This document shows positions 3,563 to 64,000 of a stretch of 64,000 nt of DNA, one piece after another. The DNA lies in the NCBI RefSeq assembly GCF_006345805.1, contig NC_043010.1:34410001-34474000 (forward strand), read 5' to 3'. This stretch comes from Octopus sinensis. Its lineage: Eukaryota. The position numbers and the translations under genes were made by a program. The notes beneath the pieces were generated by a model. The model saw nothing but the letters and a program-made list of their open reading frames with translations. It made no database searches and was not told the origin of the DNA. Numbering within the stretch: the stretch's first letter is position 1; each line of letters begins with the position of its first letter.

Positions 3563-3724
3563 GGCGTAGGAGTGGCTGTGTGGTAAGTAGCTTGCTTATC
3601 AACCACATGGTTCCGTGTTCAGTTCCACTGTGTGGCACCTTGGGCAAGTGTTTTCTACTATAGCCTCGGGCTGACCAAAGCCTTGCGAGTGGATTTGGTA
3701 GACAGAAACTGAAAGAAGCCCATC
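3563..3724 (+). mobile_element. tRNA-derived SINE (abundant octopus-type family) in the ATP5ME intron
   Basis: Head ggcgtaggagtggctgtgtggtaagtagcttgc with B-box-like gttcagttcc. Near-identical to copies at 5443, 7369 and 12050, and to reverse copies at 14380-14545 and 49850-50005. Confidence 0.85.
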
Positions 3725-7368: not shown

Positions 7369-7660
7369 CGCACGCATGCATGGCTGTGTGGTAAGAAGTT
7401 TGCTTCTCAACAGCATCTTTTTGGGTTCATTTCCATTGCGTGGCACCTTGGACAAGTGTCTCTTCTGTAATCTTGGGCCAACCAAAGCTTTCTTAGTGGA
7501 TTTAGTAGACAGAAACTGAAAGAAGTCCATCGTATATATACATATTGGCCTGCTCACTTAGCCAGCAGGGTGGTATCATTTGAAGGCTAAAACAATGTGA
7601 AGCACATTGTGACCAGCGATGTGTAGCAACATCTGATAGCCTGGTCGGTCATGTGATCAA

Positions 7661-14372: not shown

Positions 14373-14545
14373 CATATATACGACAGGCTTCTTTCAGTTT
14401 CCATCTACCAAATCCACTCACAAGGCTTTGGCTGGCCTGAGGCTATAGTTGAAGATACTTTCCCAAGGTGCTACGCAGAGGTACTGAACCTGGAACCATG
14501 TAGTTCATAAGCAAGCTACTTACCACACAGCCACACTTATGCCTA
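14160..14545 (-). mobile_element. Composite SINE, reverse orientation
   Basis: Reverse complement of the 5443-5835 structure. Confidence 0.8.
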
Positions 14546-16690: not shown

Positions 16691-17089
16691 GCTTTTCAGA
16701 GAAAATCTAATTAGCCAAAAAAAAAGAAAAAAAAAAGGAATAAATGTGAAATACAAGGATATAATGAGTGCAAGGAATAACTAAAATAACCAAGAAAAAA
16801 CAAAAACACAAAAAACAACAGAAATCTTATAAGTACACTGCAAAAATATTTATTACTGTAGCAATTGTTGACATGTGCTAAGCATAATCCTTGATGGAGA
16901 AGGAGTGTGACATGGCAAATATTCAGCAAAAATTGGTCATTTTAGCAGTAAAAATTGTAGCTTTAATCAGAAAATTGAAACAAAAGCCCAACAAGTATTG
17001 ATATAGTTGTTTTATTTATTTAGTTTATTTTGTTTTGTTTTTCGTTTTCATGTCAGTCAATATACATAAAAACAATTCTACATAACACA

Positions 17090-21820: not shown

Positions 21821-22431
21821 GGAGTAATCTAATACAGGGGAATAAACTATTTTCTTTATTTACCCATATCACCCCCTTGCTAAAATCACTTCTCCCCGCT
21901 CCATTAAATTTTCCTGTCACATGATGGGTACCAATGCCCTAAGGTATTTTTGATTGAGCCAATATATTTTTCACAGCTTTTTATCTTTGCTTTTCCTTTC
22001 AGCTAACCAAGCAACTGTGACGTAGCACTGGAAATCTATTTTTGTCTATGTGACTTCTAGACTGAAGCAAAATGCTTTTAGCCCAAGTAGCAAAGATACG
22101 TTATAACTGTGTAGATAATTGTAACAGTCTAAACTCAAGACCATATACTTACTTTAAAACAGTGGCCAATAGTTTAAATGTTAAATAATTTGTATTCTTA
22201 CAAACTATGTATTTGTTTCTTTTTTTTTTAACAGTTGATAGCCATTAATACCAAAGATAGAAAAATGAGGACAGAAAAATGACAAAAATGAGAAAAGAAG
22301 AAAAGGAAATAAAAATATATGTATATTTACACATACTTATATATATATATAGTATATATATATAAGTATATATGCATGTAAGCATGTATATATGTATGTA
22401 AATATATGCATGTATATATATATACATCTAC

Positions 22432-22520
22432 CAGTGAGAAAATGATTGCATTTGATGTAGTCTTACCTGGAGGGCAAAGGGAGCGAATAAAAAAAAAAGA
22501 AAGTGAATAAAATAAAGTGA
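22432..22520 (-). promoter_or_regulatory. Strong 3' splice site directly followed by a 5' splice-site consensus (YAG|GTAAGA): candidate recursive splice site or 35-nt exon
   Basis: Minus strand reads ttctttttttttttattcgctccctttgccctccAG|GTAAGActac, junction 22467/22466. No AG for about 110 nt upstream. Second donor CTG|GTAGAT at 22432/22431. Confidence 0.5.
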
Positions 22521-25294: not shown

Positions 25295-26331
25295 TTATAT
25301 CAAAATGTGACTTGCTTTTTTTTTATTTAATTTTTTTCTCCATATTTTTTTCTGATTAATTTTATAATAATAAATAACTACTAAGTAAAAACACCACACC
25401 CATAATGAACCAAAGAAAGAAAATAAAAAAATAGAAATTTACCCCAATTCTTCCAAAAATGCAAATAAAGAGCTTAAAGAAAAAGGGTTATCTTCAAATT
25501 ATATATAATCATATATAACCTATATTCAACTAGTAACAACATTATTATTAAATTACAATATTTATATTGTCAATTATCATTATTAAACTACTTATATGTA
25601 CTCTAATCAAAACTATTATTATTATTGAAAGTAAAATTAGTAGTAGTAGTAGTAACAGTAGTAGTACTTTGCACAAGATTAGTTTCTACCTTGAATAGGC
25701 AGGAAGTATAGTTTATTGAATTAAACCTCTTGGTATATAACTGGTATAATTAATAAAATGACTTTGTGTTCTTCCACATTTTGAGAAATGTAAGAAGAAA
25801 AAAAAGTCAAATTATGGCAGGATTCGAACCTAGTGCATTGAAGATGGAAACTAAATACTGCAGGTCATTTAGTCCGGTGCGCTACATTTTTAGAACCTAT
25901 TCAGCTCCCCCTCCCCTCCCACCCTATTGCAGGATGTTTCCATTATTAATAGCATGATAAAGGAAGAATTAGGACTTCTCAAAGTTATGTATGAAAGCAA
26001 CGCTAGATTTGTTTGTGTATGTATGTATAGTTACTTGTGTATATATGTGTGTGTGTATTTTCATGTGGTTGGATGCGTAAGTTATCTTATACAGGCGGGA
26101 TTTTGTTAATCTATTAAGACATATATATATATGTGTGTATATATATGTGCGTGTATATATATATATATATATATACACACAGGTATATATGTATATATGC
26201 ATATATATATATACATATACATTTATATATATGTAATATATAATATATACATATATATATATGTATATATACATAAAAATCAAATTAAATTAAGAGACCG
26301 CAATAATATTCTTTTTTCTTCTTTTTCTTAC

Positions 26332-29300
26332 ACGTGTACCAGTTGATATATATGCTAGGTTAATTTTACTGATGCGGTGTATATTACTCAGTGATCGTCC
26401 CCTTCTGGTTGAGTCTGAATCATTCCTGTCTGAGAGCATCTCCTGTTCAGAAAGCCACAATAATTCTTTTACTGGTGACCTCCGGCAGCGTGACCTCGAT
26501 CGTGGATTGTTGAAGGAGTCAGCTGATAAATAGGGAGATGTTGGTGTACCTGCTCTCTTTGTTGGTGGTGTTGAGTTCGCACGAGGTAGTGGCAGTGGAG
26601 GTGCACTCGTATCCTCAGAAACAACGATTTTAGGCCGTGGAGGAATTTTGGTCTTTTGATGGCTACTGTTGTCACGAGATGATTTATTGGAGTGCAACCA
26701 CAGAGCCGTGTCTATCTCGCACGAACTCTCAGTTGCAGTAGACAACTGTGACAAATTATGGTGCTTCTTCTTTTTCCTCTGCCTCTTCTTTCGCTTTGTC
26801 AGTGGTGTGGTATCTGAGAAAGCTGCTTCCTCTTCAGTTAGATGATGTATCAATGGCAGGTATGTATGCTGCCTATAAGGGGATTCAATTTTTATTAGAC
26901 TGACTGGAATGTTCTTTGAGTCCCTTGAATGTTTGCTCTTCTGTTTCTTTTTAGACAACAGCGGCGAAGCTTTGCTAGAAGAGTTCCCTTTCTGAGATTT
27001 CTGTTTGGAATTTGGATTAGCTTCACCTACTTTCCGCATGGATTTCTCGGACAGGGAACTGTCCAAGACTTTCTTATTGGACTTGTTCTTTGAATCTGAA
27101 TTTGAAGATTCAGTTCTTTCCTTGAATGATCTTTTGTCCTCTGTTTCTTTGAGTTCAGGGATTGTAAGTGATGACTGCTTTAATTTCTTCTTTTTGTGTG
27201 TTGAGAGTTCTTCCAGTGAATCTGTTACTTGTTTGGTAATTGATGTCACTAAAGAAGATATTTTATCAACAACAGACTTAGCAACTTTTCCAGTTGATGA
27301 TTCCTCTTTCTCTTTATTTTCTTTGTTTGGACATTTTGAGTCAGTTTCAGATGGAATTTTTGAAATTGGAGGTGCTATTGACATATGTGTCGTTTTCTCT
27401 TCAACAGGTTCCAACTTCACTAATTTCTCAGTTTCAGCAATGAATTTCTTCTGAGAATGTTCACTGCTTGTTATGGATGAAGAATCTGTTGAGATGTTCT
27501 TAGATTCTTTGCTTGGACACAATTCACTGGAATTTTCCTTTGTAGAGACTTCTTTGTGTTTTGTCTTTTTCTTTGACAACTTTAATATACTAGAATTATT
27601 CTCATTAGTCTTTGAGTCCTCAGAGCTTTCTTCGTTTGACGTACTAGATTTCTTTTTCCGGATTGGAGAGTCTTCAAGAACAGCTTGGGCTTTCTTAGAA
27701 ATTGCTGAAGAAACTTTCGACAAAGTTTGGCTAACCTTGTTCTCTGTCTTGGAAACACCTTTCTTTATTTCTACTGTATTATTATCTTCCACTACAGAAA
27801 TCTTGGCTGATGTTTCAACTGAAGAACTTTCAGGAGGAACTGGAATGACTTTACCACTTTCAGAGAATTTTACTTGTGATGTCTTCTTTTGTTTCTTCTT
27901 CTTTTTTGTGTCCTCTGGTGTTGTCATAACCTGACTATATTTTAGTTCTTCACTATTGGAAAAGCTCTGATTACTAATTGTGAGATCTGGAGTTTCTGCC
28001 ACTTTTAATTCTGATGTCATTGCTGGTGAGTCAACATATAAAGGACCTGTTTTTGTTGCCTTACTGGGAGTAGATTGGAAATATTCTTCAATTCCTTTCG
28101 ATAATATTGATTTCTCATCATCACCATAAGGGAAAGGTGAACGCCTTTTCTTCTTGGTTTCCAAAGAAGTTATTTTTGTATTGGAAGTGCTAGAGTTTTC
28201 ATTGTCCTTGCTTACAATGTTTGTTTCATCAAGAATTTCAGACTGAACATTTTCATTTGATTCAGAAATATTAACAAAAGATTTCTTATCAGATTTCTCA
28301 GCCAGTCTGAAATCAGCATCTTTGAAATCCTCAGAAAATAACAGATGTTTGTCACTACCTGTTCCTTCTGGGGGAGAGCTGATGGATTTTGAAACATGCT
28401 TATCCAGCATTGGTTTTCTAGAAAGTTCAAGTTCTGAATCACTTTCATCTAAATCCTCCTTAACAATAGCTGATAAATGTGGTTTCTCTTGTGCAAAGGC
28501 CAAATTATTCCCATCTTCAGTTCTGGATAGTTGCTCTACTTTTGCTTGTTTATTTTCTTTCTGAGCAGTCTTGTGAATGTTCTCGACAATCATTTCTCCT
28601 TTAACATCTTCCAGCATACTAGCTTGATGAGTAGTCACATCAATTTCAGTTTCAGATGGGAGCAGACTGTACACACACTCATCTGTTCTTTCTTCATTGC
28701 TCTCCACAACAAACTCTTTCTGAAGTTCTTCCTCTGAAGATAACTGTCTGTCAGTTTTAGGATAGTCATCTTGAGATTTGGTAGCTTCTGAATCTTTCAA
28801 TTCTTTCACCAGTGGAATCTGACCATCTCCCTCCTGACTTTTGAAGGCTCCATCTTTACAAAGAGTGTCTGGTGTTTTTTCTTTAGAAAATGATTCTTTA
28901 TCTTTCTTGGAAGACTGGTTAGACTTCTTCTGTTCTGATGTTGTTTCATTTTCATCTTTTAAAGATGACTTCTTTTTCTTTTTCTTCTTTTTCTTTGGAT
29001 GGATGTCTTTCTCAGTCTCTTCTTCAGGAGAACATTTTGTGCACGTAACATCCGTAGGTTCATGTGTGGAAACATGATCTTTAATCTCGGGAGTTGCTTC
29101 CTTCACTTGATTCTCATTAGGGGCACCATCGATGTCTTTATCAATTATTGTTTCGGGGGAAGATTTGCTCTCTGCCGACTTCAAAGAAGTAGTGTCAGTG
29201 CAAGATGAAACAGTTTCTGCAAGTGCAGGAAGTATATGTTGGCTGACATCAGGATCACTTATCATAGGTTCTATAAAATCAGATGAATTGATTGAGTCAT

Positions 29301-32300
29301 CACCATAGCCATATAAATATGGGGATCGCCTTTTCTTTCGTTTCTTCTTTGGCTTTTCTTCCTCAGGTGCAATTATACTTACATTGCTTGCAGCCACAGT
29401 TGACTGAACAGGGAAGGTAGGACTAGCAGTAATGGTGGATTCTCCACATTTAACTTCTAACTGCTTTTGCTCCACTTCTGTAATATCTGTTTTCAGTTCT
29501 ATTTGCTCTGGAGATGATTTGCTAAATGTCTCTGATTCCATTTGAGCTGGACTACTGTCCTTTATCTCCATCTGAGTTGTACTTTCCTCTGTCTTTGACA
29601 GAGCTGTATCTTCCGTTGCCTTCAACAGGCATGTACTTTCCTTTATTTCCTGTTGATCTGGACTGTCCTCTGTTTTCAACAGACATGACCTATGCTCTAT
29701 TTCTAGCTGAGTTGCATTGTCCCATTCAGCAGTTAAATTAACATTGGATGACTCTGTAAATGTTTCCTGAACATCTGAAATCTCAACATGTTTAACAAGA
29801 TCCACATTTTTACTCTGCTCTTCCTTTTTCTCTGACTGGTCAACAGATGAATGTTCAATGACTCCTATGTCTGTTTGTTCTTTGAGAAGCTGGCAATAAG
29901 GCTCAGTGTCAGCTATATTCACAAAAGCTTCAGGTTGTTGGACAGAAGCCGAATCAAAGCCAACTTCTTCTGAATACTTAATGTTGAGTGTGTTGTCATT
30001 CAATGGTTCACTGGTAATTTCACTGACTTCGCATTCTATACTTGAGATCTCAGTTTCATGAGTAAGCATTTCTTTACATGGACTGACAACTAATTTATTT
30101 ACAACTTGCTCAATTTCTTCTATATTAGCATTTTCTTTGATGACACTTGGAGTAAATTCAGAGTCTAGTAATTCAGTTGAAGACTCCTGTTCAGTAATTG
30201 CATCGACAAAGTGAGCGTCATGTGACAAATGAGATTCTTCTGTTACTGAATTGATTTTATTCTGTGTTTTTAAAGTATCTTCAGATATTTCAAATTTGTC
30301 TTCAACTGCTAAGCTAGTTGGTGGTAATTCTTTCAAAGATTCTTCTATTTCTAGTTCAGCCAATGATTGTATTTCCATTTGGTTTTTAGTTACAGCACTG
30401 TCATTTTGATCCAATGAAGCTATATTTGGATCCATACCTGAAGAATCAAACTCAGATTCCTTGGATAATTCTGCTGTTGTTTCAACAAACTGCATCAGCA
30501 TTTCATTATCAAGAGCAAAGAATCTTGGTTTTTTCTTCTGTTTCTTTTTCTTTTTGTTCTTGATGCCAGTATTCTTTGTGTCAGCATCAGTCTCTTTCAA
30601 GAACTGGTCTTTCTCTGTACTGTAATCTCTACAGATGTCTGTCTCTTGTCTTTGATTTTCATCAAATGTTGCCAAATGTTTGTCTGAAAGAATAATTTTA
30701 TGTTCTTCTTGACTTCTTAGTTCTTCTGGGAATTCAGTCACAACATAACTTGATTCATTTCCAAAACATTCTTTATAAAATTGTTCCGATGATGGCTGAA
30801 TGTTTTCAAGAGGTTTTTGTTGCTCCAGCTCTGCCTCATTACTTGCTGGTGAAAACTTGCCAATATCTGTTTCTGAGAATTCAGCATTAAAAATGTCCTC
30901 TGGCTTTTTTGTTGATGTTTCTTCAGTAAAGTTAGATTTAACTTCATCAAAAGTAACTGGCATAATTTCCTCTTCAGAATGGTCTTTATCAGGCACTGAT
31001 TTCTCAGCCAAAGAATTTTCAGGAATACTTACGCTACTTTCTTCAAAAGAGCTAGCTGAGGTAAATTCAAATTCTTTTCCTACTGATTCCAAAACACTGA
31101 CATTATCTAACTCCTTAGCTTGTGGTTCACTCAATTCTTCATGTTGGGTGGCATTCAACTCGTTAGTTTCACACAATTCTCTATTTAATAACTTCATCTG
31201 GAAAATATCAACATCTGAACTTACAGTCTCTTTAGAAGTTTCGCAATCAGCCCCATCATGTAATGAGGAACTAGATTCAGCTAGACTGGTGTTAACTGGA
31301 AGACTGTAGCTCAATGGTTTATCAATCTGTTGACGCATAGTTCCAAAGAAAACTTCTTTTCTATCAACAAATTCTGAAACATCATCAGACATTTTGTCAT
31401 TAGGACCTTCTGTGTGATCTTCAACAATTTCTATAATGGAACTCTCCTCAGAGATTTCTTCTGTAGCTTGAGAACTGAGATATTCAGAATGTTCTGGAAA
31501 ATTGTCAACATGGACATGTTTCCCATCAGCCGAATCAGGAACAGTAGCAATAATCTCTTTAGATAGATTTGCTTCAGTTAATGCTGCTTTATCTGTCTCA
31601 CTTATAACATCTTCAGATTTCATACTAACATCATCAGACTGGGTTTGCAAGTTGGTCTCTTCTGATGAAATGTTTGCTGATGGAAGCTCAGTACATTTAT
31701 TGCTTACATCATTTTCTCCACCGAATTCCAGAATAAGATGTTGATTTGATGGATAATCCCCATCAGAATCAGATGAGGATGTTTCCTGAGAAGACTCTGA
31801 ATGATCTTCTGGTGATTTTGGTCGCTTTGAAACATAGTTCTGTGACAGTTCATTAGAAATCTCTGAACTATCAACTGAAAGCAGAGATGACAAGTCAATA
31901 GCGAGTTGTTCTGATGTTTGTGTGAGTTCTTGTGATTCCCTGCGAAGTTTTTCCATATCTGTTGAATCCAGCACATCAGTTGGCTTTTCAGTGTCATCAT
32001 CGATGATGTTGCTATCATTATCAGCTATTTCATGAGCATTTTCTGCCTTACTACTAATGATATCAGATGACAAGAGCATTTCAGAATAAGTAAGTAGCAT
32101 GGTTTTTTCAGGATCAGTAGATTTAGTTTGCCAATAAGGTTCTGCTTGAGATGGATAATTCATCAGACTGGGATAATTACTGGTACCATATCGGAATTCA
32201 TTTTCCTTGCTGAAAGAGTAACAATCAGTTTGGTAACCTGACTTTGAATATTGTGTAACAGATCCTTTTTGATTTACTTTCTGAAGCATATCTTGAATTT

Positions 32301-35300
32301 GTTCTTCAGTAAAGTATGACATTCTGTCATTCCTTCTTTCATCTGCTGTGAAGTCAATGACAATAGAATCTCTACGATCGTTGCCCTTATCACTTAGTTT
32401 CTCCTCATGAGTATTTTTTACAATGATAGTTGTCTCCTCTTCAACCGATTCTTTTCTTTTTGATTCAAAGTTGTCTGAAGTGGTTGTATGTTCAGAAGGA
32501 GATTTTGCTATTGTGCATAAAACTTCTTCAGGAGAGTTTGCTAATGTCACACTAGATTTTACAGTTTTCTTTGATGGTGAACTTTCATCAAGGAGATTTG
32601 TTTCCTTGGGTTCAGCAATATTCATGTTTACTTCAGTTGAGAAAGTTCCGTACCTCTTTGGTATGACAAATATGTTATGGTAGTTTTTCATGTCATAGTC
32701 AGGTACAAAGGTGTGCAATGTGCAACGGAAGCCTTCATATGAAGATGTTGATGAGCAATCAGATTCCATTGAGGATAAGCGTTTCAGCAGTTCACTGTGA
32801 GTTTCTATTGGAAATCCTGATTCACTAAGTCGGTGATGTTTCAATGCCATTTTGCATTCCTCATTATCCAATTGACTCTCTTCAACATCTTTACTCATTT
32901 CCTCCTCTGAAGACTCAGAATAATTAGGTACATTAATAAACAAGGCATTTGAATAATTACGATGTGGGGACTTTCTACGCCACCTCCGAGCAATTCTGTC
33001 TCCAGGAGACAGCTTTGATTTTGATCGTTTTGAACGTGATGTTAAACCATCCCTTTTAGCACTTGAGCGCTGATTTTGCGATTTAGTTGTATCAGAAACG
33101 CCAGTGTTTGGTAGTTGTAATTCCAGTGTGCTTGTAAACCTACAGTTTTCATTTTCCTTGGTTCTATTAATGGAACTTTCTGAACTATCTAGATGTTCAT
33201 CGCTGACATGGAGTTCTTCAGTAATTGGCAATTCAACCATCAGGACATTAGCAAAGATTTCTTCATTTTCATTGGCTGAAGACTTTGACAGAACTTCTGT
33301 TGATTGGTCTGTTTCTCGATGCTGATCTGTAGAGAGTTCAGAAAACTCACTGGACTTAAGATTGTCTACATGTTGATTATCTTGGTGTTTTATGTTTTTA
33401 TCACAAGTGGGTTCTATACTAGTGACAAATTTAGAGCTTTGAAGATTTCCCTGTGTATCAAGATTATCTTTGTCCTTGTTTTTTCCCATTTTTTCAATGA
33501 AGTACAGAGTCTCCAATTTCAGCATTAACTGTGTGTCTGGAATGTCTTCAGCATAGTTGGAGTAAAGTGAAGCAACATTTTGTAATTTCTGCTCCATTTG
33601 TTCAGTTACCTCAAGATTTACATATTTTGTTTCTGTTTCACTAGGTACAACTAATTCATCAGAGTAAGTTTCTTGGTTGTCCATCACTTCTGTGGATCCC
33701 ATGGTATCTTGAACTTCTGTAAGACTTGCATCCTGGGGAATGATGGCATTGATGTCTTTTGTTACTTTGCCTTCCATGTTTTCATTTGAGTGGACCATTC
33801 CTTGAATGATTTCTGTAATTTTTTGAGAGATTTTAGTTCCTTCAGCTTTGACATCTTGCTCAGAAAGGTTTGCCTTTTCTGTTCGTTTGGTTCCTTCTGA
33901 TGCCATAGCTACAATTTCACTGAGAAGCAAAGATATCTCTTCTTCTATTATATGTTTGCGCTGAAGAGCTTCTGCCTTTTCCTGTTCAACTTTATTTAAA
34001 GTTTTTGTAGTCTCATCTGTTGGTAAAACTAGAGTAATGGATTCATTCACTTCAGACTGAGTGTCATATGTGTATGGAATATCAACTTTCACATGTGGTT
34101 CATCTTCAAAAAATATATCCTTAGCATCAAGATATTCATCATCAGAGTTGGACATAAGTGGCGTATTTTCACTGTCAGACACGCATGTTGAACTCATGTA
34201 GCCAGGAGTTGCTGTGAACATTGTTCCAGTTGAACTCGCCCAAGAGTCAAGACTACCAGAGAAAAATTCAGGCTGGTCTCGATAACAATAGCTTTTATTT
34301 TGCTGAGATAGGTTATTAGCAATTTGTTCTCGCAGTTCCCAGTTAAAATCTTCTCTGTGATCAATGCTGTAATCAATATCTGATGCTGTTTCCTTGAGTT
34401 GCTCAAAAGACAGCGGAGAGGTGGATGTTTCTCTGGAAGATGGCTCACTGTGAAGACTACCTTTGGAGAAATCGTCCATCCTGGAATTGAGTCGAAGCTT
34501 AACACTTTCCACATCTTCCAGTGGATACTTTTCTATTTCTGCATATTCACTGTCTTTTTGATGGGAAGTAAAATACATATTCCAAACTTCATTATCATCA
34601 GTATTTACAGCTTTTGTAACTAAAGATTTTTTCCCCGCAAAACCATGGCTCAGTTGGGTTAAATGGCAGTCTTTGTCAGCTGAAAATTGTAAAGGTGGTG
34701 AATAATTCTCTTCATTTTCACTATCACTAATTGAATCATATTCAAGTATTTCATGATATTCTACTGAAGAGTCCCTAGGTACATTATCTTCACAGTCACT
34801 AACCTCTTCAAGAGCTGCATGTTTTATGCTATGTTCTTTTCCTCCAGATGTAGAAAACTCTTTGGTTTCCACATCACCAGATATTTGGTTTTCAGTACTG
34901 AGAATATCAGCATCTTCAAGAGGATCAGACACAGTATCTTGCCAAGATTCCAAGAAAGTCTGCACAGGTTCTTCCACTTTTGTTCTTACCTGAACTAAAG
35001 AGGGGTCTTTCTCTTCCCAATCATTATCCTCTTCAAGAGCTGAATATTGCAAGTTGTCATCTGATGGTTCGATTCTGATTGATGTTACATCATCACCAAC
35101 ACTCTCTCGAACAATAGTCTCAGAAGTAGATATACATTCCAATTTATTTGTAGCAATATCTTTAGTATCAACATCTTGGTGTTTGGTTTTTACATCATCA
35201 GATATTTGGTCTTCAGTACTGAGTATATCAGCATCTTCAAGAGGATCAGATGAAGTATCTTTCCAAGATTCCAAGAAAGTCTTTTCAGGTTCTTCCGCTT

Positions 35301-38300
35301 TTGTTCTTACCTGAACTAAAGTGGGATCTTTCTCTTCCCAATCATTATCCTCTTCAAGAGCTGAATATTCCAAGTCATCATCTTCTTTACCAGGTGTCAT
35401 AGGTGTATAAAACATTGACCAAACATCAGTTTCATCACTAGTTGTCTTAGCTTCAGTTGAATCTGTCACATCTTTATGGTGAGATGCAGATGGTAAATCC
35501 TTAGTACCTTCTATTATACCAAGTTCATTTTCAATGTCATCAACAGACACATAAATGTCATCACTAATGTCGCATTTGTCATTACATGGAACAGTTGAGG
35601 ACTTTGGGATGACTTCTATATATCTAGATTGTATCACATTGTCAGAATCCTCATCCTCTTCGAGAGCTGAATATTCCAAGTTATCATCTTCTCCACCAGG
35701 TGTCATAGGTGTATAAAACATCGACCAAACATCGGTTTCATCACCAGATGTCGTTGCTGTCTTCTCTTCAGAAGAGTCTGTAATATCTCTATGCTGAGAT
35801 GCAGAATGTAAGTCCTTAGTTCTTTCTATTACTCCAAGTTCATTTTCAATGTCATCAACAGACACATAAATGCTGTCACCAGTGTCCCATTCTTCCTTAC
35901 ACGGAACAGCTGAAGACTTTGGCGCAACTTCTATATGCCTAGATTGTATCACATTGTCAGAATCCTCAGTACTTAGAATATCAGCATCTTCAAGAGGATC
36001 AGAGACAGTATCTTTCCATGATTCCATGAAAGTCTGCACAGGTCCTTCAATTGGATGTTTTACTTGCACTAAAGTGTGACCTTTCTCTTGCCAGTCATTA
36101 TCCTCTTCAAGAGCTGAATATTCCAAGTCATAATCGGATGGTTCAATTCTGACTGATGTCACATCATCACCAACACTTTCTCGGACAATATTCTCAGATG
36201 TATTAGTATCAACATGTTGGTGTGTGGTTTTCACATCATCAGGTGTTTGTTCTTCAGTACTCAGAATATCAGCATCTTCAAGAGGATCTGACGCAGTGTC
36301 TTTCCAAGATTCTAAGAAAGTCTTTTCAGGTTCTTCCACTTTTGATCTTACCTGAACTAAAGTTGGATCCTTCTCCTTCCAGTCATTATCCTCTTCAAGA
36401 GCTGAATATTCCAAGTTGTAATCTGATGGTTCAATTCTGACTGATGTCACATCATCACCAACACTCTCTTGGACAATATTCTCAGAAGTAGGTATTGATT
36501 TAAATTTCTTCACATCAATACTTTTTGTACCAACATTTTGGTCTTTGGATTTTCCATCATCAGGTGTTTGTTCTTCAGTACTGAGAATATCAGCATCTTC
36601 AAGAGGATCTGACGCAGTGTCTTTCCAAGATTCTAAGAAAGTCTTTTCAGGTTCTTCCACTTTTGATCTTACCTGAACTAAAGTTGGATCCTTCTCCTTC
36701 CAGTCATTATCCTCTTCAAGAGCTGAATATTCCAAGTTGTAATCTGATGGTTCAATTCTGACTGATGTCACATCATCACCAACACTTTCTTGGACAATAT
36801 TCTCAGAAGTAGATATTGATTTCAATTTCTTCACATCAATACTTTTTGTACCAACATTTTGGTCTTTGGATTTTCCATCATCAGGTGTTTGGTCTTCAGT
36901 ACTGAGAATATCAGCATCTTCAAGAGGATCTGACACAGTATCTTTCCAAGATTCTAAGAAAGTCTTTTCAGGTTCTTCCCCTTTTGTTCTTACCTGAACT
37001 AAAGTTGGATCCTTCTCCTCCCAATCATTATCCTCTTCAAGAGCTGAATATTCCAAGTTGTCATCTGATGTTTCAAATTTTACTGATGTCACATCAACAT
37101 CAATTCTATCTCTGACGACAGTCTCAGAAGTAGATTTTGTAAAGTCAGGAATTTCATATTGTTTTTTAACTATATCCTTAGATTCAACACCTTGGTCTTT
37201 GGTTTTTCCATCATCAGATATTTGGTCTTCAGTACTTAGAATATCAGCATCTTCAAGAGGATCTGATGCAGTATCTTTCCAAGATTCTAGGAATGTTTGC
37301 ACAGGTTTTACGACTTCACTTCTTACCTGAACTAAAGTTGGATCTTTCTCTTCCCAATCATTATCCTCTTCAAGAGCTGAATATTGCAAGTTGTCATCTG
37401 ATGGTTCAATTCTGACTGATGTTACATCATCACCAACACTCTTGCGGACAATATTCTCAGAAGTAGATATACATTCTAATTTCTTCATAGTAATATCTTT
37501 TGTATCAATATTTTGGTGTTTGGTTTTTACATCACCAGATATTTGGTCTTCAGTATTGAGAATATCAGCATCTTCAAGAGGATCTGATACAGTATCTTTC
37601 CAAGATTCCAAGAAAGTTTCCACAGGTCCTTTCATTTCTGTTCTTACCTGAACTAAAGTGGGATCTTTCTCCTCCCAATCATTATCCTCTTCGAGAGCTG
37701 AATATTCCAAGTTATCATCTTCTTCACCAGGTGTCATAGGTGTATAAAACATCGACCAAACATCGGTTTCATCACCAGATGTCGTTGCTGTCTTCTCTTC
37801 AGAAGAGTCTGTAACATCTTTATGCTGAGATGCAGAACGTTGGTGTGTGGTTTTCACATCATCTGGTGTTTGCTCTTCAGTACTCAGAATATCAGCATCT
37901 TCAAGAGGATCTGACACAGTGTCTTTCCAAGATTCTAAGAAAGTCTTTGCAGGTTCTTCCACTTTTGTTCTTACCTGAACTAAAGTGGGATCTTTCTCCT
38001 TCCAGTCATTATCCTCTTCAAGAGCTGAATATTCCAAGTCGTAATCTGATGGTTCAATTCTGACTGATGTCACATCATCACCAACACTCTCTCGAACAAT
38101 ACTCTCAGAGGTAGATATACATTCCAATTTATTTGTAGCAATATTTTTTGTATCAAGACCTTGGTGCTTGGTTTTTCCATCATCAGGTGTTTGGTCTTCA
38201 GTACTGAGAATATCAGCATCTTCAAGAGGATCTGATGCAGTATCTTTCCAAGATTCCAGGAATGTCTGTATAGGTTCTTCTACTACACTTGTTACCTGAA

Positions 38301-41300
38301 CTAAAGTGGGATCCTTCTCCTCCCAATCATTATCCTCTTCAAGAGCTGAATATTCCAAGTCATCATCTTCTTTACCAGGTGTCATGGGTGTATAAAACAT
38401 TGACCAAACATCTGTTTCATCATGGGTTGCCTTCTCTTCAGAGGAATCTGTGACATCTTTGTGGTGAGACGGAGATGGTAAATCCCTAGTTCTGTCAGTT
38501 ATACTAAGTTCTTTTTCATTAACAGACACATAAATGTTGTTATCGGAATCCCATTGTTTTGTACAAGAAACAGTTGAAGATTTAGCAACAACTTCTGTAT
38601 GTCTTGAGTTTATCACATTGTTACTAGAATCATCAGTACTCAGAATATCAGCATCTTCAAGAGGATCTGACACAGTGTCTTTCCAAGATTCTAAGAAAGT
38701 CTTTGCAGGTTCTTCCACTTTTGTTCTTACCTGAACTAAAGTGGGATCTTTCTCCTTCCAGTCATTATCCTCTTCAAGAGCTGAATATTCCAAGTCGTAA
38801 TCCGATGGTTCGATTCTGACTGATGTTACATCATCACCAACACTCTCATGGACAATATTCTCAGATGTAGATAGTGATTCCAATTTCTTCACATCAATAC
38901 TTTTTGTACCAATATTTTGGTCTTTGGATTTTCCATCATCAGGTGTTTGGTCTTCAGTACTGAGAATATCAGCATCTTCAAGAGGATCTGATACAGTATC
39001 TTTCCAAGATTCCAAGAAAGTCTTTTCAGGTTCTTCCACTTTTGTTCTTACTTGGACTAAAGTGGGATCTTTCTCTTCCCAATCATTATCCTCTTCAAGA
39101 GCTGAATATTCCAAGCTGTCATCTGATGGTTCAAGTTTCACTGATGTCACATCATGATCATCAAATCTCTCTCTGCCTACATTTTCAGAAGTCACTCTAT
39201 CAAAAGCCTTTGTTTCAAAATCTTGTTCCTTGGTATCTAAATCACCAGATATTTGATGATCTTCAGTTCTTAGAATATCAACATCTTTAAGATGATCTGA
39301 CACAGTATCTTTACAAGATTGCAAGGAAGTTTCCATAGGCTCTTCACCTTCTTGTCTTTCCTGAGCTAAATTTGGGTCTTTCTCTTTCAAGCCATTATCC
39401 TCTTCAAGAGCTGAATAATCCACTTTAGTGTATGATGTATTTTCTTCTATTTTACTACCATCCTCTGCATCAACAAATTCCATTTTAAGCTCCTCTTCTG
39501 CATCAACAAATTCAGCATCTTCCTTATCTGAATATTCACTGTCTTCTGTTGTCTCTTTGTGACTTAAATCCTGATGTTCGCTTTCAACAATTTCTTTCTC
39601 TGAGAATAAGTTCCCATCTTCAGTTGTCTGATGCACAGATGTTTTCTCAAAGACACTAGTTTGTGTAACTATTGTATTTGAATCTTGATATTCATAACGA
39701 CTGCTAGTTTCTTTGTCAGTAGATGAGTCGTCATTATCAGACATCACTTCCTCCTTCTTGTCATTCTCTTCCTCCTCACCATTTTCTGGAGAAGTAGAAA
39801 GCATAGCTAACCATATATCATCATCATCTTGATCATCATAATCATCGCCTTTCTTATCAGGTTCTTCTTCCAAAGTTTTTATTTCATCTACTTTTCCTGA
39901 AGGTTCTTCATCTGATTGGAAGGTGTCACATGTCATTTTCTTGATATCAGTGTCTTTAATCAAAGAACCTTCAGGTTTGGAAGGTGAACCATCAATATGA
40001 TCAATGCTTTTGGATTCACTTGTGGTATCTGACTGAAAAAATCCATCTTTGGAAAAACTTTTGGAACTTCGTTCAATTGTGCGGAAATTGGTATCAGGTA
40101 TTAGAAAAGACTCACATCTATCAATACTGCATTCATCTGTAAAAGAGATATTCTCAGATATTAATGTTTTTTCTTGAAGCATTGAGTCCAACTGCAGAGA
40201 GAGATCAAAATGTCTACCACTGATGTTATTTTCAGCAGGTGTTTTGTCATCAGATATCTCTTTCTTTTCAGAATTACTCTCTTTCCTATTTTCTTCACTA
40301 TCAAGAGAAGGTGCTTGATGTTTCCCACCAGAATTAGAAGAACCTAATAATATGTCAGAAGATTCTGTGACAATTTTGTGCTGAGATATAGATGGTAAAT
40401 TTCTAGTTACTTGTGTTATACCAAGTTCATTTTCAATGTCATCAACAGACACATAAATATTGTCATCAGAATCCCAATTTCTCTGAGTAGGAAAAGTTGA
40501 AGATTTAGCAACAACCTCTGCATGTCTAGATTGCATCACATTGACAGAATCATCAGTACTGAGAATATCAGCATCTTCAAGAGGATCTGACACAGTGTCT
40601 TTCCAAGATTCTAAGAAAGTCTTTGCAGGTTCTTCCACTTTTGTTCTTACCGGAACTAAAGTGGGATCTTTCTCCTTCCAGTCATTATCCTCTTCAAGAG
40701 CTGAATATTCCAAGTCGTAATCTGATGGTTCAATTCTGACTGATGTCACATCATCACCAACACTCTCTCGAACAATAATCTCAGAGGTAGATATACATTC
40801 CAATTTATTTGTAGCAATATTTTTTGTATCAAGACCTTGGTGCTTGGTTTTCCCATCATCAGGTGTTTGGTCTTCAGTACTGAGAATATCAGCATCTTCA
40901 AGAGGATCTGACACAGTATCTTTCCAAGATTCTAAGAAAGTCTTTGCAGGTTCTTCCACTTTCGTTCTTACCTGAACTAAAGTTGAATCCTTCTCCTTCC
41001 AGTCATTATCCTCTTCAAGAGCTGAATATTCCAAGTCGTAATCTGATGGTTCAATTCTGACTGATGTCACATCATCACCAACACTCTCTTGGACAATATT
41101 CTCAGAAGAAGATATTGATTTAAATTCTTCACATCAATACTTTTTGTACCAACATTTTGGTCTTTGGGTTTTCCATCATCAGGTGTTTGGTCTTCAGTAC
41201 TCAGAATATCAGCATCTTCAAGAGGATCTGACGCAGTGTCTTTCCAAGATTCCAAGAAAGTCTTTGCAGGTTCTTCCACTTTTGTTCTTACCTGAACTAA

Positions 41301-44300
41301 AGTGGGATCTTTCTCCTTCCAGTCATTATCCTCTTCAAGAGCTGAATATTCCAAGTCGTAATCTGATGGTTCAATTCTGAGTGATGTCACATCATCACCA
41401 ACACTCTCTTGGACAATATTCTCAGAAGTAGGTATTGATTTAAATTTCTTCACATCAATACTTTTTGTACCAACATTTTGGTCTTTGGATTTTCCATCAT
41501 CAGGTGTTTGGTCTTCAGTACTCAGAATATCAGCATCTTCAAGAGGATCTGACACAGTGTCTTTCCAAGATTCTATGAAAGTCTTTGCAGGTTCTTCCAC
41601 TTTTGTTCTTACCTGAACTAAAGTGGGATCTTTCTCCTTCCAGTCATTATCCTCTTCAAGAGCTGAATATTCCAAGTCGTAATCTGATGGTTCAATTCTG
41701 AGTGATGTCACATCATCACCAACACTCTCTTGGACAATATTCTCAGAAGAAGATATTGATTTAAATTTCTTCACATCAATACTTTTTGTACCAACATTTT
41801 GGTCTTTGGGTTTTCCATCATCAGGTGTTTGGTCTTCAGTACTCAGAATATCAGCATCTTCAAGAGGATCTGACGCAGTGTCTTTCCAAGATTCTGAGAA
41901 AGTCTTTTCAGGTTCTTCTACTTTTGATCTTACCTGAACTAAAGTTGGATCTTTCTCCTTCCAGTCATTATCCTCTTCAAGAGCTGAATATTCCAAGTCG
42001 TAATCTGATGGTTCAATTCTGACTGATGTCACATCATCACCAACACTCTCTTGGACAATATTCTCAGAAGTAGGTATTGATTTAAATTTCTTCACATCAA
42101 TACTTTTTGTACCAACATTTTGGTCTTTGGGTTTTCCATCATCAGGTGTTTGGTCTTCAGTACTCAGAATATCAGCATCTTCAAGAGGATCTGACACAGT
42201 GTCTTTCCAAGATTCTAAGAAAGTCTTTGCAGGTTCTTCCACTTTTGTTCTTACCTGAACTAAAGTGGGATCTTTCTCCTTCCAGTCATTATCCTCTTCA
42301 AGAGCTGAATATTCCAAGTCGTAATCTGATGGTTCAATTCTGAGTGATGTCACATCATCACCAAAACTCTCTTGGACAATATTCTCAGAAGTAGGTATTG
42401 ATTTAAATTTCTTCACATCAATACTTTTTGTACCAACATTTTGGTCTTTGGATTTTCCATCATCAGGTGTTTGGTCTTCAGTACTCACAATATCAGCATC
42501 TTCAAGAGGATCTGACACAGTGTCTTTCCAAGATTCTATGAAAGTCTTTTCAGGTTCTTCCACTTTTGTTCTTACCTGAACTAAAGTGGGATCTTTCTCC
42601 TTCCAGTCATTATCCTCTTCAAGAGCTGAATATTCCAAGTCGTAATCTGATGGTTCAATTCTGACTGATGTCACATCATCACCAACACTTTCTTGGACAA
42701 TATTCTCAGAAGTAGATATTGATTTCAATTTCTTCACATCAATACTTTTTGTACCAACATTTTGGTCTTTGGATTTTCCATCATCAGGAGTTTGGTCTTC
42801 AGTACTCAGAATATCAGCATCTTCAAGAGGATCTGACACAGTGTCTTTCCAAGATTCTAAGAAAGTCTTTTCAGGTTCTTCCACTTTTGTTCTTACCTGA
42901 ACTAAAGTGGGATCTTTCTCCTTCCAGTCATTATCCTCTTCAAGAGCTGAATATTCCAAGTCGTAATCTGATGGTTCAATTCTGACTGATGTCACATCAT
43001 CACCAACACTCTCTTGGACAATATTCTCAGAAGTAGGTATTGATTTCAATTTCTTCACATCAATACTTTTTGTATCAACATTTTGGTCTTTGGATTTTCC
43101 ATCATCAGGTGTTTGGTCTTCAGTACTCAGAATATCAGCATCTTCAAGAGGATCTGACACAGTGTCTTTCCAAGATTCTAAGAAAGTCTTTTCAGGTTCT
43201 TCCACTTTTGTTCTTACCTGAACTAAAGTGGGATCTTTCTCCTTCCAGTCATTATCCTCTTCAAGAGCTGAATATTCCAAGTCGTAATCTGATGGTTCAA
43301 TTCTGAGTGATGTCACATCATCACCAACACTCTCTGGACAATATTCTCAGAAGTAGGTATTGATTTAAATTTCTTCACATCAATACTTTTTGTACCAACA
43401 TTTTGGTCTTTGGATTTTCCATCATCAGGTGTTTGGTCTTCAGTACTCAGAATATCAGCATCTTCAAGAGGATCTGACACAGTGTCTTTCCAAGATTCTA
43501 AGAAAGTCTTTTCAGGTTCTTCCACTTTTGTTCTTACCTGAACTAAAGTGGGATCTTTCTCCTTCCAGTCATTATCCTCTTCAAGAGCTGAATATTCCAA
43601 GTCGTAATCTGATGGTTCAATTCTGACTGATGTCACATCATCACCAACAATTTCTTGGACAATATTCTCAGAAGTAGATATTGATTTCAATTTCTTCACA
43701 TCAATACTTTTTGTACCAACATTTTGGTCTTTGGATTTTCCATCATCAGGTGTTTGGTCTTCAGTACTCAGAATATCAGCATCTTCAAGAGGATCTGACA
43801 CAGTGTCTTTCCAAGATTCTAAGAAAGTCTTTTCAGGTTCTTCCACTTTTGTTCTTACCTGAACTAAAGTGGGATCTTTCTCCTTCCAGTCATTATCCTC
43901 TTCAAGAGCTGAATATTCCAAGTCGTAATCTGATGGTTCAATTCTGACTGATGTCACATCATCACCAACACTCTCTTGGACAATATTCTCAGAAGTAGGT
44001 ATTGATTTCAATTTCTTCACATCAATACTTTTTGTATCAACATTTTGGTCTTTGGATTTTCCATCATCAGGTGTTTGGTCTTCAGTACTCAGAATATCAG
44101 CATCTTCAAGAGGATCTGACACAGTGTCTTTCCAAGATTCCAAGAAAGTCTCCACAGGTTCTTCATATTTATGTTTTACCTGAAATAATGTAGGGCCTTT
44201 TTCTTCCCAGTCATTATCCTCTTCAAGAGCTGAATATTCCAAGTTGTCTATTTGCACAGACATCACCTCAGAAACACCTACTTCCCTTATAACATTTTCA

Positions 44301-47101
44301 GAAGTGGGAGTATTAATGTCAGGAATGTTTGAATATATCACAGTATTTATGTTTTTTCCATCATTAGTGTTGTCATAGTTTGGTATTTCCACATCTCTTG
44401 TTAGAATATCAGCATCTTCAAGAGGATCTGATGCAGTGTCTTGCCAAGATTCCAAGAACGTCTGCACCGGCAATTGATGATATTCAACAACTTGTAGTTT
44501 GGACGGATCTTTCTCTTCCCAGTCATTATCCTCTTCAAGAGCTGAATATTCAAGATTCTTCTCATCTGTAGCTGCATCGTTTTTTCCATTTTCAGAAGAA
44601 TCTAAAAGATTTTCATTCTTTAAAATTTCATGAGTATTTATTTCTCTATCTACAGAATGTACTGTTTCCCCAGAACTTTCAGGATCTTGGGACTCATCTC
44701 CATTCATTAACAGCTGTGTTGTGATGTTGTTTATTTCACTGTGATGAATGCCAAGCAGTTCTTGTGTTCCTTGAGATGAGCAGTCGATAACTCCTGAAGT
44801 GATCTTATCACTTTCAACTTTTGTAACCTGAGGATCTTGTCTTCTTTCAGATGTTTTTGTGTCTCCAACACCTTTGAAACTATCTTCTGATGAATAAAAT
44901 TTTGACCATATATAAAGATCTTTCCGATCTTCTTCAAGTGGTTCAGACACAGTGTATTTCCAATCAGTGCTATATTGATTTCTGTCGATCAATGATTTAT
45001 AATCATCTGTGTTCTCATCTGTTTCATAAAATTTCCTCCAAATTTCATTGTCTCTGCTTATTTTCAAAGCCTTCTCTTCCCAATCCTTGTTGGATATTGG
45101 ATTGTAAAACATTTTCCAAATGTCTTCATGCTCTATTTCATTTTCCAAAGGTTCAGATTCTGTAGAATCGTCTTTCAGTAAGTATGCCATGGTGTCATTA
45201 TTGTCTTTACTTGGTTCTTTCAGAGTAAGACATGGCTTTTCATTCCAGTCATTATCCTCCTCAAGTGGAGAATAAAACTTTGTCCAAACCTCATTATATT
45301 CCGTATCTAAATTTGAAGTTACTGAATCTGAATGTGGTTGTACAGTTTGGTCAATGGGACTGGATCTTCCATCAAATCCAGTTGAAACACCCAAAGTAAC
45401 TTCCTCTGAGTGTGATGGAAGCCTATTGCTTTCTGGTTCTGGTGATGCTTTTGTCTCTGGCTGGGTTAAACCAGCTTTGCTTGTCATAATGTCCTTGCTT
45501 ATTGATGTCATTTTAGTTACAGGACATATGTCATATAATGTTTCGGTAACATATTGGTGTGGTTGTTGGGTTTGAGTTTCATCAAGATTAGAGGACACTT
45601 GGTAAGTTTTGTCCTCCAAATTAGTCCACTGAGGAATATTATCTGACTGATTTACTAAGATGGAACTAGTGGTGTCAGTCATTTTCATATCAGTTTTTTG
45701 TTCAACTGAATTATATTCAAAGTTGTTTAATTCACTCTCATCTTTAGATGTTTCTGTATGAGAGGAAACATTAGTGACCAAATCAGACCTGCTAAATTGG
45801 GCATCTACAGTGTCTGAAGATTTGGTCTCTTCTGGCTTACCTGTAGATTGTAAAGAAGCTTCTTCAGCCTCTCCACTTGTGACAATTTCTTGGGTAGTTT
45901 TTTGTGTTCTGTCAGAGTCGAGTAGGCTAATGTTGGTATCAGCTTCAACAGGTATTAGCTTCTCAGAACTTTTCAGTTCTTCATATTTTTGTACGTTTGT
46001 GTCTCTTCTAGAAACAACATCTTTAGCTCCTAGCGAATTCAGTTTTTCACCTGTATATTCTAATTCATAATCTTCAGTTTCTTCTCCATCTAAACTTTGT
46101 ATTTTTAGGGGTTGTTTTAAAATTGGGCTAACTGAAGATTCTTGAAAGGATAAAGGATCAGATTCTTTTGTGTTAGTGGCTTGTAATGTAGCTTGGTCCA
46201 AAAGAGAACCATCCTTTATAACTAAACTAGACATTTCTTGACTAAACCTTATCTGGTCTCCTTGTAGGGAATCTAAGCCTGAAGATACGTCATCTCTTGA
46301 GACAGTTATAGAACTTTCACAGATGTTAGTACTGTAATTGTCTTCAGAGACTTGAGTTACTCCTAAATCTAAAGCCCCACCACTGCCACTTTCAGGTTTT
46401 TCTACTCTAGTTACATCAGACTGGCTATGGGCAACATATTCTAAATCAGATTGATCTAAACTTTCATGGTCAAACTCATGTGAAGTTTCTGATATGGGGG
46501 TAGAAATACTAAGATCACCTGACATGAGGCCTGAATCAAACATCTCTGATGTGGAATAATCACTGCTAGGGGATATTTCTTCTCTACGATCTAAATACTT
46601 TAGTTTTGAGTTTTCATTCGCTGAAGGAGATTCTACAAGAGAATCGTTGTTAGTCACATGATCAACATTTAAGTCACTGGTAGCTTTGACCAGTCCTGCA
46701 TCTACATCACTGCAAATACCATTATAAAAAAAACCATTGCTTACTTCCTCAGCTTTGGAAGCAGTGTTGCCATCTGTGTCTTCACTGTACTCTGCCAAAC
46801 CTGAAGTTTCGGAAGTTTTCTTTGTAAGTGCATTTGTTTCTTGAAGAGAGGTAATGTCTCCTGCCCCAGGCTGTTGAATCTCCACAGTTGGAGAATGTAT
46901 ATTGCTGAGGCGAGTTTGCATTTCACAAACGTCCTTTCCAGGGGCCGATTCTTCTTCATTGTATGCCCAAGCCCATGGAAAGTCATCAGCCCATCCTGTG
47001 TTAGCTGGCGGTAAAGAAATGGGAGTTTCTTCGGTTGGGGGAGATTTTAGGAATGGGTCTGTTAAAGATTCGGTGCTGCCAAAACCCTCACTATTTAGCA
47101 C
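26332..47101 (-). CDS. Giant coding exon (20,770 nt as assembled; 20,772 nt = 6,924 aa after repairing two 1-nt deletions): disordered repeat-rich scaffold region
   Basis: Three abutting ORFs (47155-43313, 43316-41067, 41070-26290) are broken only where a repeat unit lacks one T (about 43335 and 41125). Acceptor atttctttacAG|GTG at 47101 in phase 0. Donor CGT|GTAAGA at 26332 in phase 0 (alternatives: ACTG|GTACAC at 26340, or read-through to TAA at 26290). No SINE or microsatellite in about 21 kb. Confidence 0.85.
34880..44560 (-). repeat. Coding tandem repeat array: 27 YSALEED motifs, mostly in a 321-bp/107-aa unit, interleaved with a second module
   Basis: The unit [61 protein letters not shown]... 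was counted in the three ORF translations (4+7+16). Periodicity 321 bp (e.g. 41786/42107, 42719/43040). Confidence 0.95.
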
Positions 47102-49153: not shown

Positions 49154-49264
49154 CTCTTGGGATATTGTGCATCTTTCATCTTTCCCAACGGTATCCCTGC
49201 GACTCGATGACTTGCTCCATTCAGCATGGCCCATTTTCACTAGCTCTTCATTGATGTTAGTTGT
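49154..49264 (-). CDS. Exon (phase 0-0) TTNINEELVKMGHAEWSKSSSRRDTVGKDERCTISQE: C-terminal helix of an extended Tudor/SN-like domain
   Basis: Acceptor tttttttttaccctctag| and donor GAG|GTACGA; 111 nt. INEELVKMGHAEW fits the recalled IN..LV..G.A.W terminus of extended Tudor domains (e.g. AKAP1 INRSLVERGLAQW). Phase matches the giant-exon acceptor. Confidence 0.75.
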
Positions 49265-49604: not shown

Positions 49605-50005
49605 CTCTTTTACATGTTTCAGTCATTTGACTGCGGCCATGCTGGAGCACCACCTTAATCGAGAAATCGACCCCAGGATTTATTCTTTGTAAGCCTAGTA
49701 CTTATTCTATTGATCTCTTTTGCTGAACCAGTAAGTTTTGGGGACATAAACACACCAACATCAGTTGTCAAGTGATGCTGGGGGGACAAACACAGACACA
49801 AAGACACACACACATAAATATATATACACATATATATACATGACAGGCTTCTTTCAGTTTCCATCTATCAAATTCACTCACAAGGTTTTGGTCAGCCTGA
49901 GGCTATAGCGGAAGGCACTTGCCCAAGGTGCAATTCAGTGGGACTGTACTCAGAACCATGTGGTTGAGAAGCAAGTTTTTTACCACACAGTCATATCTGT
50001 GCCTA
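49605..50005 (-). mobile_element. Composite SINE, reverse orientation
   Basis: Nearly colinear with 14160-14545. Confidence 0.8.
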
Positions 50006-56194: not shown

Positions 56195-56204
<10 letters not shown>

Positions 56205-56227
<23 letters not shown>

Positions 56228-56470
56228 TTAATGTCTGCTTTCCATTCTGGCTTGGGTTGGATGGTTTGACAGGAGCTGGCCAGGCAGGAGACTGCACCAG
56301 GCTTCAGTGTCTGCTTTGACATGGTTTTTACAGCTGGATGCCCTTCCAACCACACTACAGAGTGGACTGAGAGCTTTTTATGTAACACCAGCACTAGCAG
56401 AGCCACCAAGTAAGTAACTTGCAAGACAACTATCCTTTGAGAGGGGAGGGGCATTGGAGGAGGTGACCTT
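56205..56470 (-). mobile_element. Retroposon fragment with (ATG)n tail
   Basis: Related to 8445-8690 (cagctggatgcccttcc; ttttatgtaacaccagcac). Confidence 0.65.
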
Positions 56471-57351: not shown

Positions 57352-57405
57352 CTTGGCTGCAGCCCGTTTTGTGTAGGCTCTCAGCCACAAATTACACCAG
57401 GTCAC
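57352..57405 (-). CDS. Exon (phase 0-0) VTWCNLWLRAYTKRAAAK, probably the strand preceding the Tudor-SN terminal helix
   Basis: Acceptor ctctccccaaatccttccttcacag| and donor AAG|GTAGGT; 54 nt, only frame 0 open. When joined to 49264, CNLW...INEELV parallels AKAP1 IQLW...INRSLV. Confidence 0.6.
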
Positions 57406-63990: not shown

Positions 63991-64000
63991 GGGGCTTTAG

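Follow-up and report, generated by a model that had tools for sequence, protein, structure and literature searches.

Within the 64,000 nucleotides (nt) of Octopus sinensis DNA analysed here (hereafter the window, whose coordinates are used throughout), the minus strand carries a single frame of 20,770 nt (47101-26332) with the boundaries first proposed for one giant exon. We consider it probable that the octopus orthologue of TDRKH/Papi uses it as a giant alternative last coding exon, and that this exon is a composite one with two processing outcomes. The frame, its conservation, the conservation of its splice sites, and the domain identity of the host gene were all observed directly in the data. 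For comparison we used the orthologous locus of Argonauta hians (L001), from an assembly built from HiFi reads with hifiasm (PMC12682272), and the 626-amino-acid (aa) KH and Tudor gene model of that species (P0001, from GINGER). The host gene extends beyond the end of the window at position 64000, and we followed it in a further stretch of O. sinensis sequence (L002) containing the upstream KH/Tudor exons.

The frame is made up of three abutting minus-strand open stretches, at 47155-43316 (1280 codons), 43346-41070 (759 codons), and 41133-26293 (4947 codons). Joined, they amount to one frame of about 6,937 codons, in which the only breaks are two 1-nt deletions. This bears out the single frame from 47101 to 26332, interrupted by two such deletions, that had been proposed in an earlier reading of the sequence (the original prediction), and restoring the two bases gives the predicted 20,772 nt, an exact multiple of three (3 x 6,924). 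No other reading frame in the interval stays open for more than 169 codons. The sequence has a GC content of 36%, and about 7% of random codons are stops at this composition; chance alone could not keep thousands of consecutive codons open. The sequence also agrees with the prediction of a canonical phase-0 acceptor (...tttctttacag/GTG, the slash marking the exon boundary), which makes 47101 the first base of the exon, and two public gene models (P0001 and the O. sinensis RefSeq protein XP_036365272.1) join this acceptor to Tudor exons. Tandem Repeats Finder (TRF) reported no di- or trinucleotide microsatellites within the interval and about 35 microsatellite rows in its flanks; the repeats that it did find inside are exclusively coding ones, with periods of 27, 315, and 321. 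Dispersed repeat families, represented by 35 intervals in the flanks, have 0 copies within the frame. The exon is therefore indeed devoid of short interspersed nuclear elements (SINEs) and microsatellites despite its repeat-rich surroundings, as had been noted.

Rather than a region full of stops, the outcome that the original prediction had named as contrary to it, the orthologous region of A. hians holds one uninterrupted open reading frame (ORF) of 6,724 codons (L001 34723-54894). Between the two species, the ratio of nonsynonymous to synonymous substitution rates (dN/dS) is 0.43 over 769 aligned codons of the N-terminal unique part (dS 0.65), 0.23 over 2,654 aligned codons of the C-terminal unique part (dS about 1.3), and 0.16 in the core of a repeat that is described below (51 aligned codons per copy). 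The C-terminal unique half includes 14 conserved islands of 37-99 residues with 71-87% identity. Because the frame is open and dN/dS is low in two genera, the exon is, judged from the sequences, protein-coding, with some 20 kb kept open by purifying selection in both. The purifying selection that had been inferred earlier is thus visible in the unique parts and in the repeat core alike, and the claim of a real giant coding exon of about 6,900 aa holds.

The identity of the host gene follows from its upstream part. P0001, the sole match retrieved when the N-terminal query was used in a word-indexed homologue search, has two KH_1 domains and one TUDOR domain in Pfam (3.3e-25 for the latter). In the PDB it is matched best by TDRKH of human and mouse (6pi7, 5j39, and 6b57), fly Papi (5ygb), and silkworm Papi (5vqg), with E-values between 5e-22 and 3e-18, and inspection of its sequence shows a hydrophobic stretch at residues 9-27 (KLALFVALPTTFVLLYLLL). 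In O. sinensis, the upstream RefSeq model contains KH_1 twice, and the KH exons, which we mapped by tblastn, lie beyond position 64000. So does the Tudor core: a search of the window for its core motifs by regular expression found none. On this sequence evidence, the host gene is a TDRKH/Papi orthologue, whose two KH domains and extended Tudor domain come with a putative N-terminal membrane anchor. The earlier proposal of an AKAP1- or TDRKH-like scaffold stands in its second half, given the two KH domains and the PDB matches. AKAP1 was rejected, as there are two KH domains instead of one and the best structural matches are TDRKH/Papi.

The two exons nearest to the giant exon on its upstream side are in phase 0 and encode the end of the Tudor domain, as predicted. 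The exon of the terminal Tudor helix (49154-49264, minus strand, 111 nt, phase 0-0, acceptor ccctctag/, donor GAG/GTACGA) reads TTNINEELVKMGHAEW...ISQE, contains INEELVKMGHAEW, and corresponds to P0001 residues 460-496; this helix is the only part of the Tudor domain inside the window. The exon is present in the A. hians model and skipped by XP_036365272.1. Further upstream, a micro-exon (57352-57405, minus strand, 54 nt, phase 0-0, acceptor cacag/, donor AAG/GTAGGT) encodes VTWCNLWLRAYTKRAAAK, a conserved 18-residue insert that separates the Tudor core from its terminal helix. Both public models include this micro-exon, which is 84% identical to A. hians in protein and 89.6% in nucleotides. 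It lies outside the solved TDRKH structures, the PDB alignments stopping at P0001 residue 438. The public models disagree on the exon neighbouring the micro-exon, and alternative splicing around the latter is possible.

The giant exon itself comprises a short part shared between isoforms and a very long specific one. The shared part (46745-47101, minus strand) consists of 119 codons with 84% protein identity to P0001 residues 492-615. After codon 119 comes an internal 5' splice site in phase 0 (GAGGAA/GTAAGC, 46739-46744, minus strand), and it is here that P0001 splices. O. sinensis and A. hians do not differ in the 18 nt preceding this site or in the 6 nt that immediately follow it, and third-position identity in the first 121 codons is 0.88-0.97, compared with 0.5-0.7 further downstream. 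At the sequence level, the region suggests an extra constraint acting on the RNA around the alternative donor. Over the first 200 aligned codons of the giant exon, dS is 0.37, and synonymous sites are unusually conserved. The remaining part (26293-46744, minus strand) is the extension specific to the giant isoform; with the two bases restored it has about 6,818 codons, open save for the two 1-nt deletions, and it has its counterpart in the uninterrupted A. hians ORF. A terminal mini-exon for the short isoform is found at 22428-22466 on the minus strand (ccctccag/GTAAGA...TGGTAG). Its acceptor is in phase 0, its 12 codons (VRLHQMQSFSHW) are followed by a stop and match the end of P0001 (VRSHDMKSFSHW, then stop), and it is embedded in a conserved island of 224 nt with 76% identity to L001 60185-60402. 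The short canonical isoform thus appears, from these conserved sites, to be produced by the internal donor and the mini-exon, and not by skipping the whole exon.

At the other end of the exon, the original prediction had placed a phase-0 GTAAGA donor directly after 26332 and had drawn from it a 0-0 symmetric exon that could be skipped. The sequence ACACGT/GTAAGA is there, and in phase 0, but the codons beyond it are conserved as protein up to a TAA stop. The proposed donor is simply the first two of 13 last codons, which together with the stop (26292-26290) occupy 26290-26331 on the minus strand. The 13 codons encode the same protein sequence in both species, the 7 differences between them all being synonymous (0 nonsynonymous), and similarity between the species collapses directly past the stop. 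An apparent similarity 3' of the stop was rejected as a TA/TG microsatellite. The identity of the final 13 codons and the collapse after the TAA indicate that these codons are translated and that the giant exon ends at its own stop. On this comparison it is probably a terminal exon rather than a 0-0 cassette.

The alternative that survives best keeps the cassette: an internal phase 0-0 exon ending at the 26332 donor, spliced for example to 22466, and skippable as a whole. We consider it unlikely. It accounts for the GT in phase 0 after 26332, which has the equivalent CGC/GTGAGG in A. hians, and for the fact that the acceptor of the mini-exon at 22466 is likewise in phase 0; it would also sit well with the lack of a conserved poly(A) signal close to the giant stop (see below). 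Yet a Val codon imposes this GT, whose conservation is hence uninformative on splicing, and the model leaves aside the synonymous-only changes in the 13 codons after the site and the end of conservation at the stop. The annotated ends of the coding sequence differ from it as well, being at the TAA in RefSeq and at the internal donor after codon 119 in A. hians.

Several points nevertheless weigh against a giant alternative last exon with two processing outcomes. No conserved poly(A) signal was found near the giant stop: an AATAAA occurs 573 nt downstream in O. sinensis, and there are 0 within 1 kb in A. hians. The giant transcript may splice on into the region of the mini-exon. A GT after 26332 is present in both species, and its occasional use as a donor is possible. 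The basis for the expression of both isoforms consists of gene models and conservation. Finally, XP_036365272.1 omits two in-frame segments located in the repeats, 38503-40419 (639 codons) and 37051-37383 (111 codons) on the minus strand, and these omissions could be either real splicing or artefacts of the tandem repeats.

Another alternative is that the last intron of TDRKH harbours a second gene, the giant ORF, with a promoter and start codon that belong to it alone, the junction with the Tudor exons being an annotation artefact. The giant part has no homology to the TDRKH of other animals, O. sinensis has an in-frame ATG 14 codons upstream of 47101, and RefSeq already splits the locus wrongly; even so, we regard such a nested gene as very unlikely. 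The best-conserved stretch is the first 120 codons or so, and it begins exactly at the canonical acceptor. The upstream ATG is not found in A. hians, whose 45 open codons ahead of the exon include no Met, and within the exon about 60 highly conserved codons precede the first Met. Moreover, two independent annotation pipelines splice the acceptor to upstream exons of the Tudor gene.

The two breaks in the O. sinensis frame are both losses of one A. In the first (43334-43335, minus strand), CCAAGAG has become CCAGAG relative to four neighbouring copies of the repeat. In the second (41124-41126, minus strand), GAAGAAAT has become GAAGAAT relative to the two preceding copies that bear the motif, the next two copies having diverged from it. 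A. hians lacks a frameshift at either place. Both deletions fall in short A-runs within a tandem array of 321-nt units that share 96% identity, and long-read consensus and short-read polishing typically fail in A-runs of near-identical tandem copies. We judged the deletions to be most likely assembly (consensus) errors in near-identical repeats because the A. hians ORF is uninterrupted in a HiFi assembly and the frame is under selection. That both are real, leaving a giant form truncated after about 1,260 residues in a recently decayed or polymorphic pseudo-exon, is highly improbable: the deletions do stand in the deposited assembly, and the RefSeq model needed invented short introns to pass over them, but the some 5,700 codons past the first one are still open and under purifying selection, the losses are of single bases in A-runs of almost identical copies, and the A. 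hians assembly shows none.

With the bases restored, the protein encoded by the giant frame has 6,937 residues (781 kDa) in O. sinensis, and that of A. hians has 6,679 (746 kDa). Asp and Glu make up 23% of it, the net charge is about -820, and the mean hydropathy is -0.97; the hydropathy profile of the tail revealed no membrane-like segment. The charge profile and the positions of Lys/Arg runs are alike in both species, with some 6,000 acidic residues followed by a basic C-terminal block (26293-28392, minus strand). This block is rich in Lys and Ser over about 700 residues, has a net charge of +42 over its last 500, and contains conserved Lys/Arg clusters as well as conserved islands that are 77-87% identical between the species.

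The repeat-bearing region of the tail (34870-44554, minus strand) contains 25 copies of a unit of about 107 aa, each with a near-invariant core of 52 aa and a variable linker, and is interrupted by unique inserts. A. hians has 27 copies, and the core is almost invariant across all 52 copies when aligned. The linkers differ between the species and so do the unit lengths (107 aa in O. sinensis versus 88, 93, or 110 aa in A. hians), from which we conclude that each species homogenised its array independently, with the core kept constant. TRF places the youngest array at 44244-40553, with 96% identity. The core includes Y-x-x-L and acidic tryptophan motifs, resemblances that serve as leads only.

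Predictions of structure are in line with a largely unfolded chain. For the repeat, AlphaFold2 with a shallow alignment gave a mean predicted local distance difference test score (pLDDT) of 46 and no confident fold. For the conserved mid region, given as a single sequence, it produced only two long helices (pLDDT 63-72). The disordered extension of about 760 kDa that had been predicted is thus, at about 780 kDa and with no fold predicted by AlphaFold2, close to what we found. The helices belong to a conserved island (...ITEIIQGMV; 33751-34011, minus strand) that is 79% identical to A. hians and is the most hydrophobic segment of the tail on the Kyte-Doolittle scale. It contains one conserved match, within a predicted helix, to an AKAP-type pattern that is equally frequent in shuffled sequence (3.2 per shuffle on average). 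The pattern is the published one for RII binding, and we keep the match only as a lead.

For the tail, an exhaustive search of 1.84 billion representative sequences, queried with 921 aa from its conserved mid region, returned 1 match, XP_036365272.1, at 100% identity. A word-indexed search with the C-terminal 847 aa and a profile of the repeat core returned nothing, a weak negative as the index omits the RefSeq protein of the locus itself. In PDB, neither the mid region nor the C-terminus nor the repeat profile had a match with an E-value below 0.29. When the giant ORF was searched against Pfam as proteins 1, 2, and 3, the first had no match and the other two no credible family; LRRNT_2 hits on proteins 2 and 3 (30.5 and 34.4 bits, for a cut-off of 20.7) were rejected as noise summed over repeats, with no single significant stretch. 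Overall, no homologue of the tail was found outside octopods in Pfam, PDB, and the large protein collections. We also found no publication on this locus or on any giant form of TDRKH: the frame is real, and the giant protein form predicted from it is so far unstudied.

A composite exon of this kind would work as follows. The exon would be entered at the acceptor at 47101 and then processed by one of two routes. If the internal donor (46745/GTAAGC) is used, it would be joined to the mini-exon at 22466-22428, 24 kb downstream, to give the canonical protein of about 620 aa. If it is ignored, translation would run on for about 6,800 more codons to the stop at 26292-26290 and give a protein of about 7,400 aa. 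We infer that both isoforms are expressed, in which case the choice made at the internal splice site would set whether the compact adaptor or the giant form is produced.

TDRKH resides on the mitochondrial outer membrane, where it assembles PIWI proteins and the trimming nuclease of the precursors of PIWI-interacting RNAs (piRNAs). The octopod tail could project from the mitochondrial surface as a multivalent scaffold for docking or for forming condensates, since a long acidic chain that bears some 25 identical short modules has the typical layout of such scaffolds. A more specific proposal, which we put forward very tentatively and think rather doubtful, is that a mitochondria-anchored TDRKH of about 0.8 MDa builds or organises the perimitochondrial granule (nuage or intermitochondrial cement) through its acidic tail, with the 52-residue modules acting in docking and a basic block at the end, or else tethers mitochondria to motors or kinases, all under the control of one splice-site switch. 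If true, it would add a new type of giant scaffold to the small-RNA pathway. A selectively maintained extension of 780 kDa is unexpected on an adaptor of the mitochondrial surface as compact and well studied as TDRKH/Papi, and would suggest either that piRNA granules are built or positioned in a manner specific to this lineage or that the protein has a second job in octopods. The invariant 52-residue module, with its 25 or so copies, provides a ready bait for a binding partner.

The ORF is less novel than the original prediction implied, as most of it is already contained in XP_036365272.1, a protein of 6,301 aa annotated in O. sinensis as "uncharacterized protein LOC115219318" (chromosome record CM016872.1). 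This model begins within the Tudor domain, joins 57405-57352 straight to 47101, reads through the internal donor to the same TAA, and covers 6,061 of the giant frame's 6,937 codons. Inside the exon it has four invented or doubtful introns, two of which merely bypass the frameshifts; we mapped the model by global alignment, which leaves intron borders within repeats ambiguous by a few bases. Immediately upstream, RefSeq annotates another gene, of 257 aa and with two KH domains, and where this gene meets the giant model, one exon (DLLELMVVSV; L002 9950-10129) that is continuous in O. sinensis is cut. Hence a single gene encodes both the KH and the Tudor parts, and the split looks like an annotation artefact. 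The split lies at L002 9930-10001, which is equivalent to about 68,840-68,910 in window coordinates and thus outside the window. In A. hians the locus is modelled as a single gene, which uses the internal donor and misses the 20-kb ORF. There is a lesson for annotation here, in that two public models mishandle the same locus differently: RefSeq by the split, the introns, and the skipped Tudor exon, and the A. hians model by missing the ORF.

Other elements of the window were noted in passing. A block of 180 nt at 16831-17004 is 88% identical to L001 65651-65829, yet none of its six reading frames is open; possible identities are a conserved non-coding element and an untranslated region between TDRKH and the neighbouring gene. 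On the plus strand, at about 3113-3192, an exon resembling ATP synthase subunit e (SLSKKEVIIQEEENKIRAIRDARIKQE) is syntenic with a PF05680 gene beside the TDRKH of A. hians. Copies of SINE-like families of short dispersed repeats occur at 3629-3720, 7436-7525, 8441-8596, 14383-14477, 49843-49931, and 56202-56347, and these families are also present many times over in the A. hians locus.

Comparison with known systems places the locus as follows. Like the known TDRKH/Papi proteins, the octopod protein has two KH_1 domains, one extended Tudor domain, and an N-terminal hydrophobic stretch, and its short isoform of about 620 aa has their usual size and layout. It differs from them in the conserved 18-residue micro-exon ahead of the last Tudor helix and, above all, in its end: whereas the known proteins stop shortly past the Tudor domain, the octopod frame adds about 6,900 residues. 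With AKAP1 it shares KH and Tudor domains combined with a mitochondrial anchor, putative in the octopod protein, and its tail contains one conserved amphipathic helix that fits the published RII-binding pattern. However, AKAP1 has a single KH domain and the octopod protein two, the helix is C-terminal to the Tudor domain, and the match to the pattern is at the level of chance.

In architecture, the closest parallels are giant proteins of other kinds. AHNAK, giant ankyrin-B/G, and MAP1B/Futsch have a single exon of many kb that encodes a largely unfolded tail with tandem units of about 100 residues. As in these systems, one gene is predicted in octopods to give small and giant forms by alternative processing. 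The octopod tail differs from theirs in being extremely acidic and in being attached to a protein of an RNA pathway rather than to a cytoskeletal adaptor, and we detected no sequence similarity between them. The processing itself resembles the switch between secreted and membrane forms of immunoglobulin mu, which is based on a composite internal/terminal exon. In both cases the exon has an internal 5' splice site that leads to downstream exons when used and to a stop within the exon when ignored. The octopod exon has the features expected of this class, namely a conserved internal donor with a downstream acceptor, and a read-on part that ends at a translated stop. It departs from immunoglobulin mu in that no conserved poly(A) signal was found near the stop and in that its read-on part consists of 20.4 kb of coding sequence.

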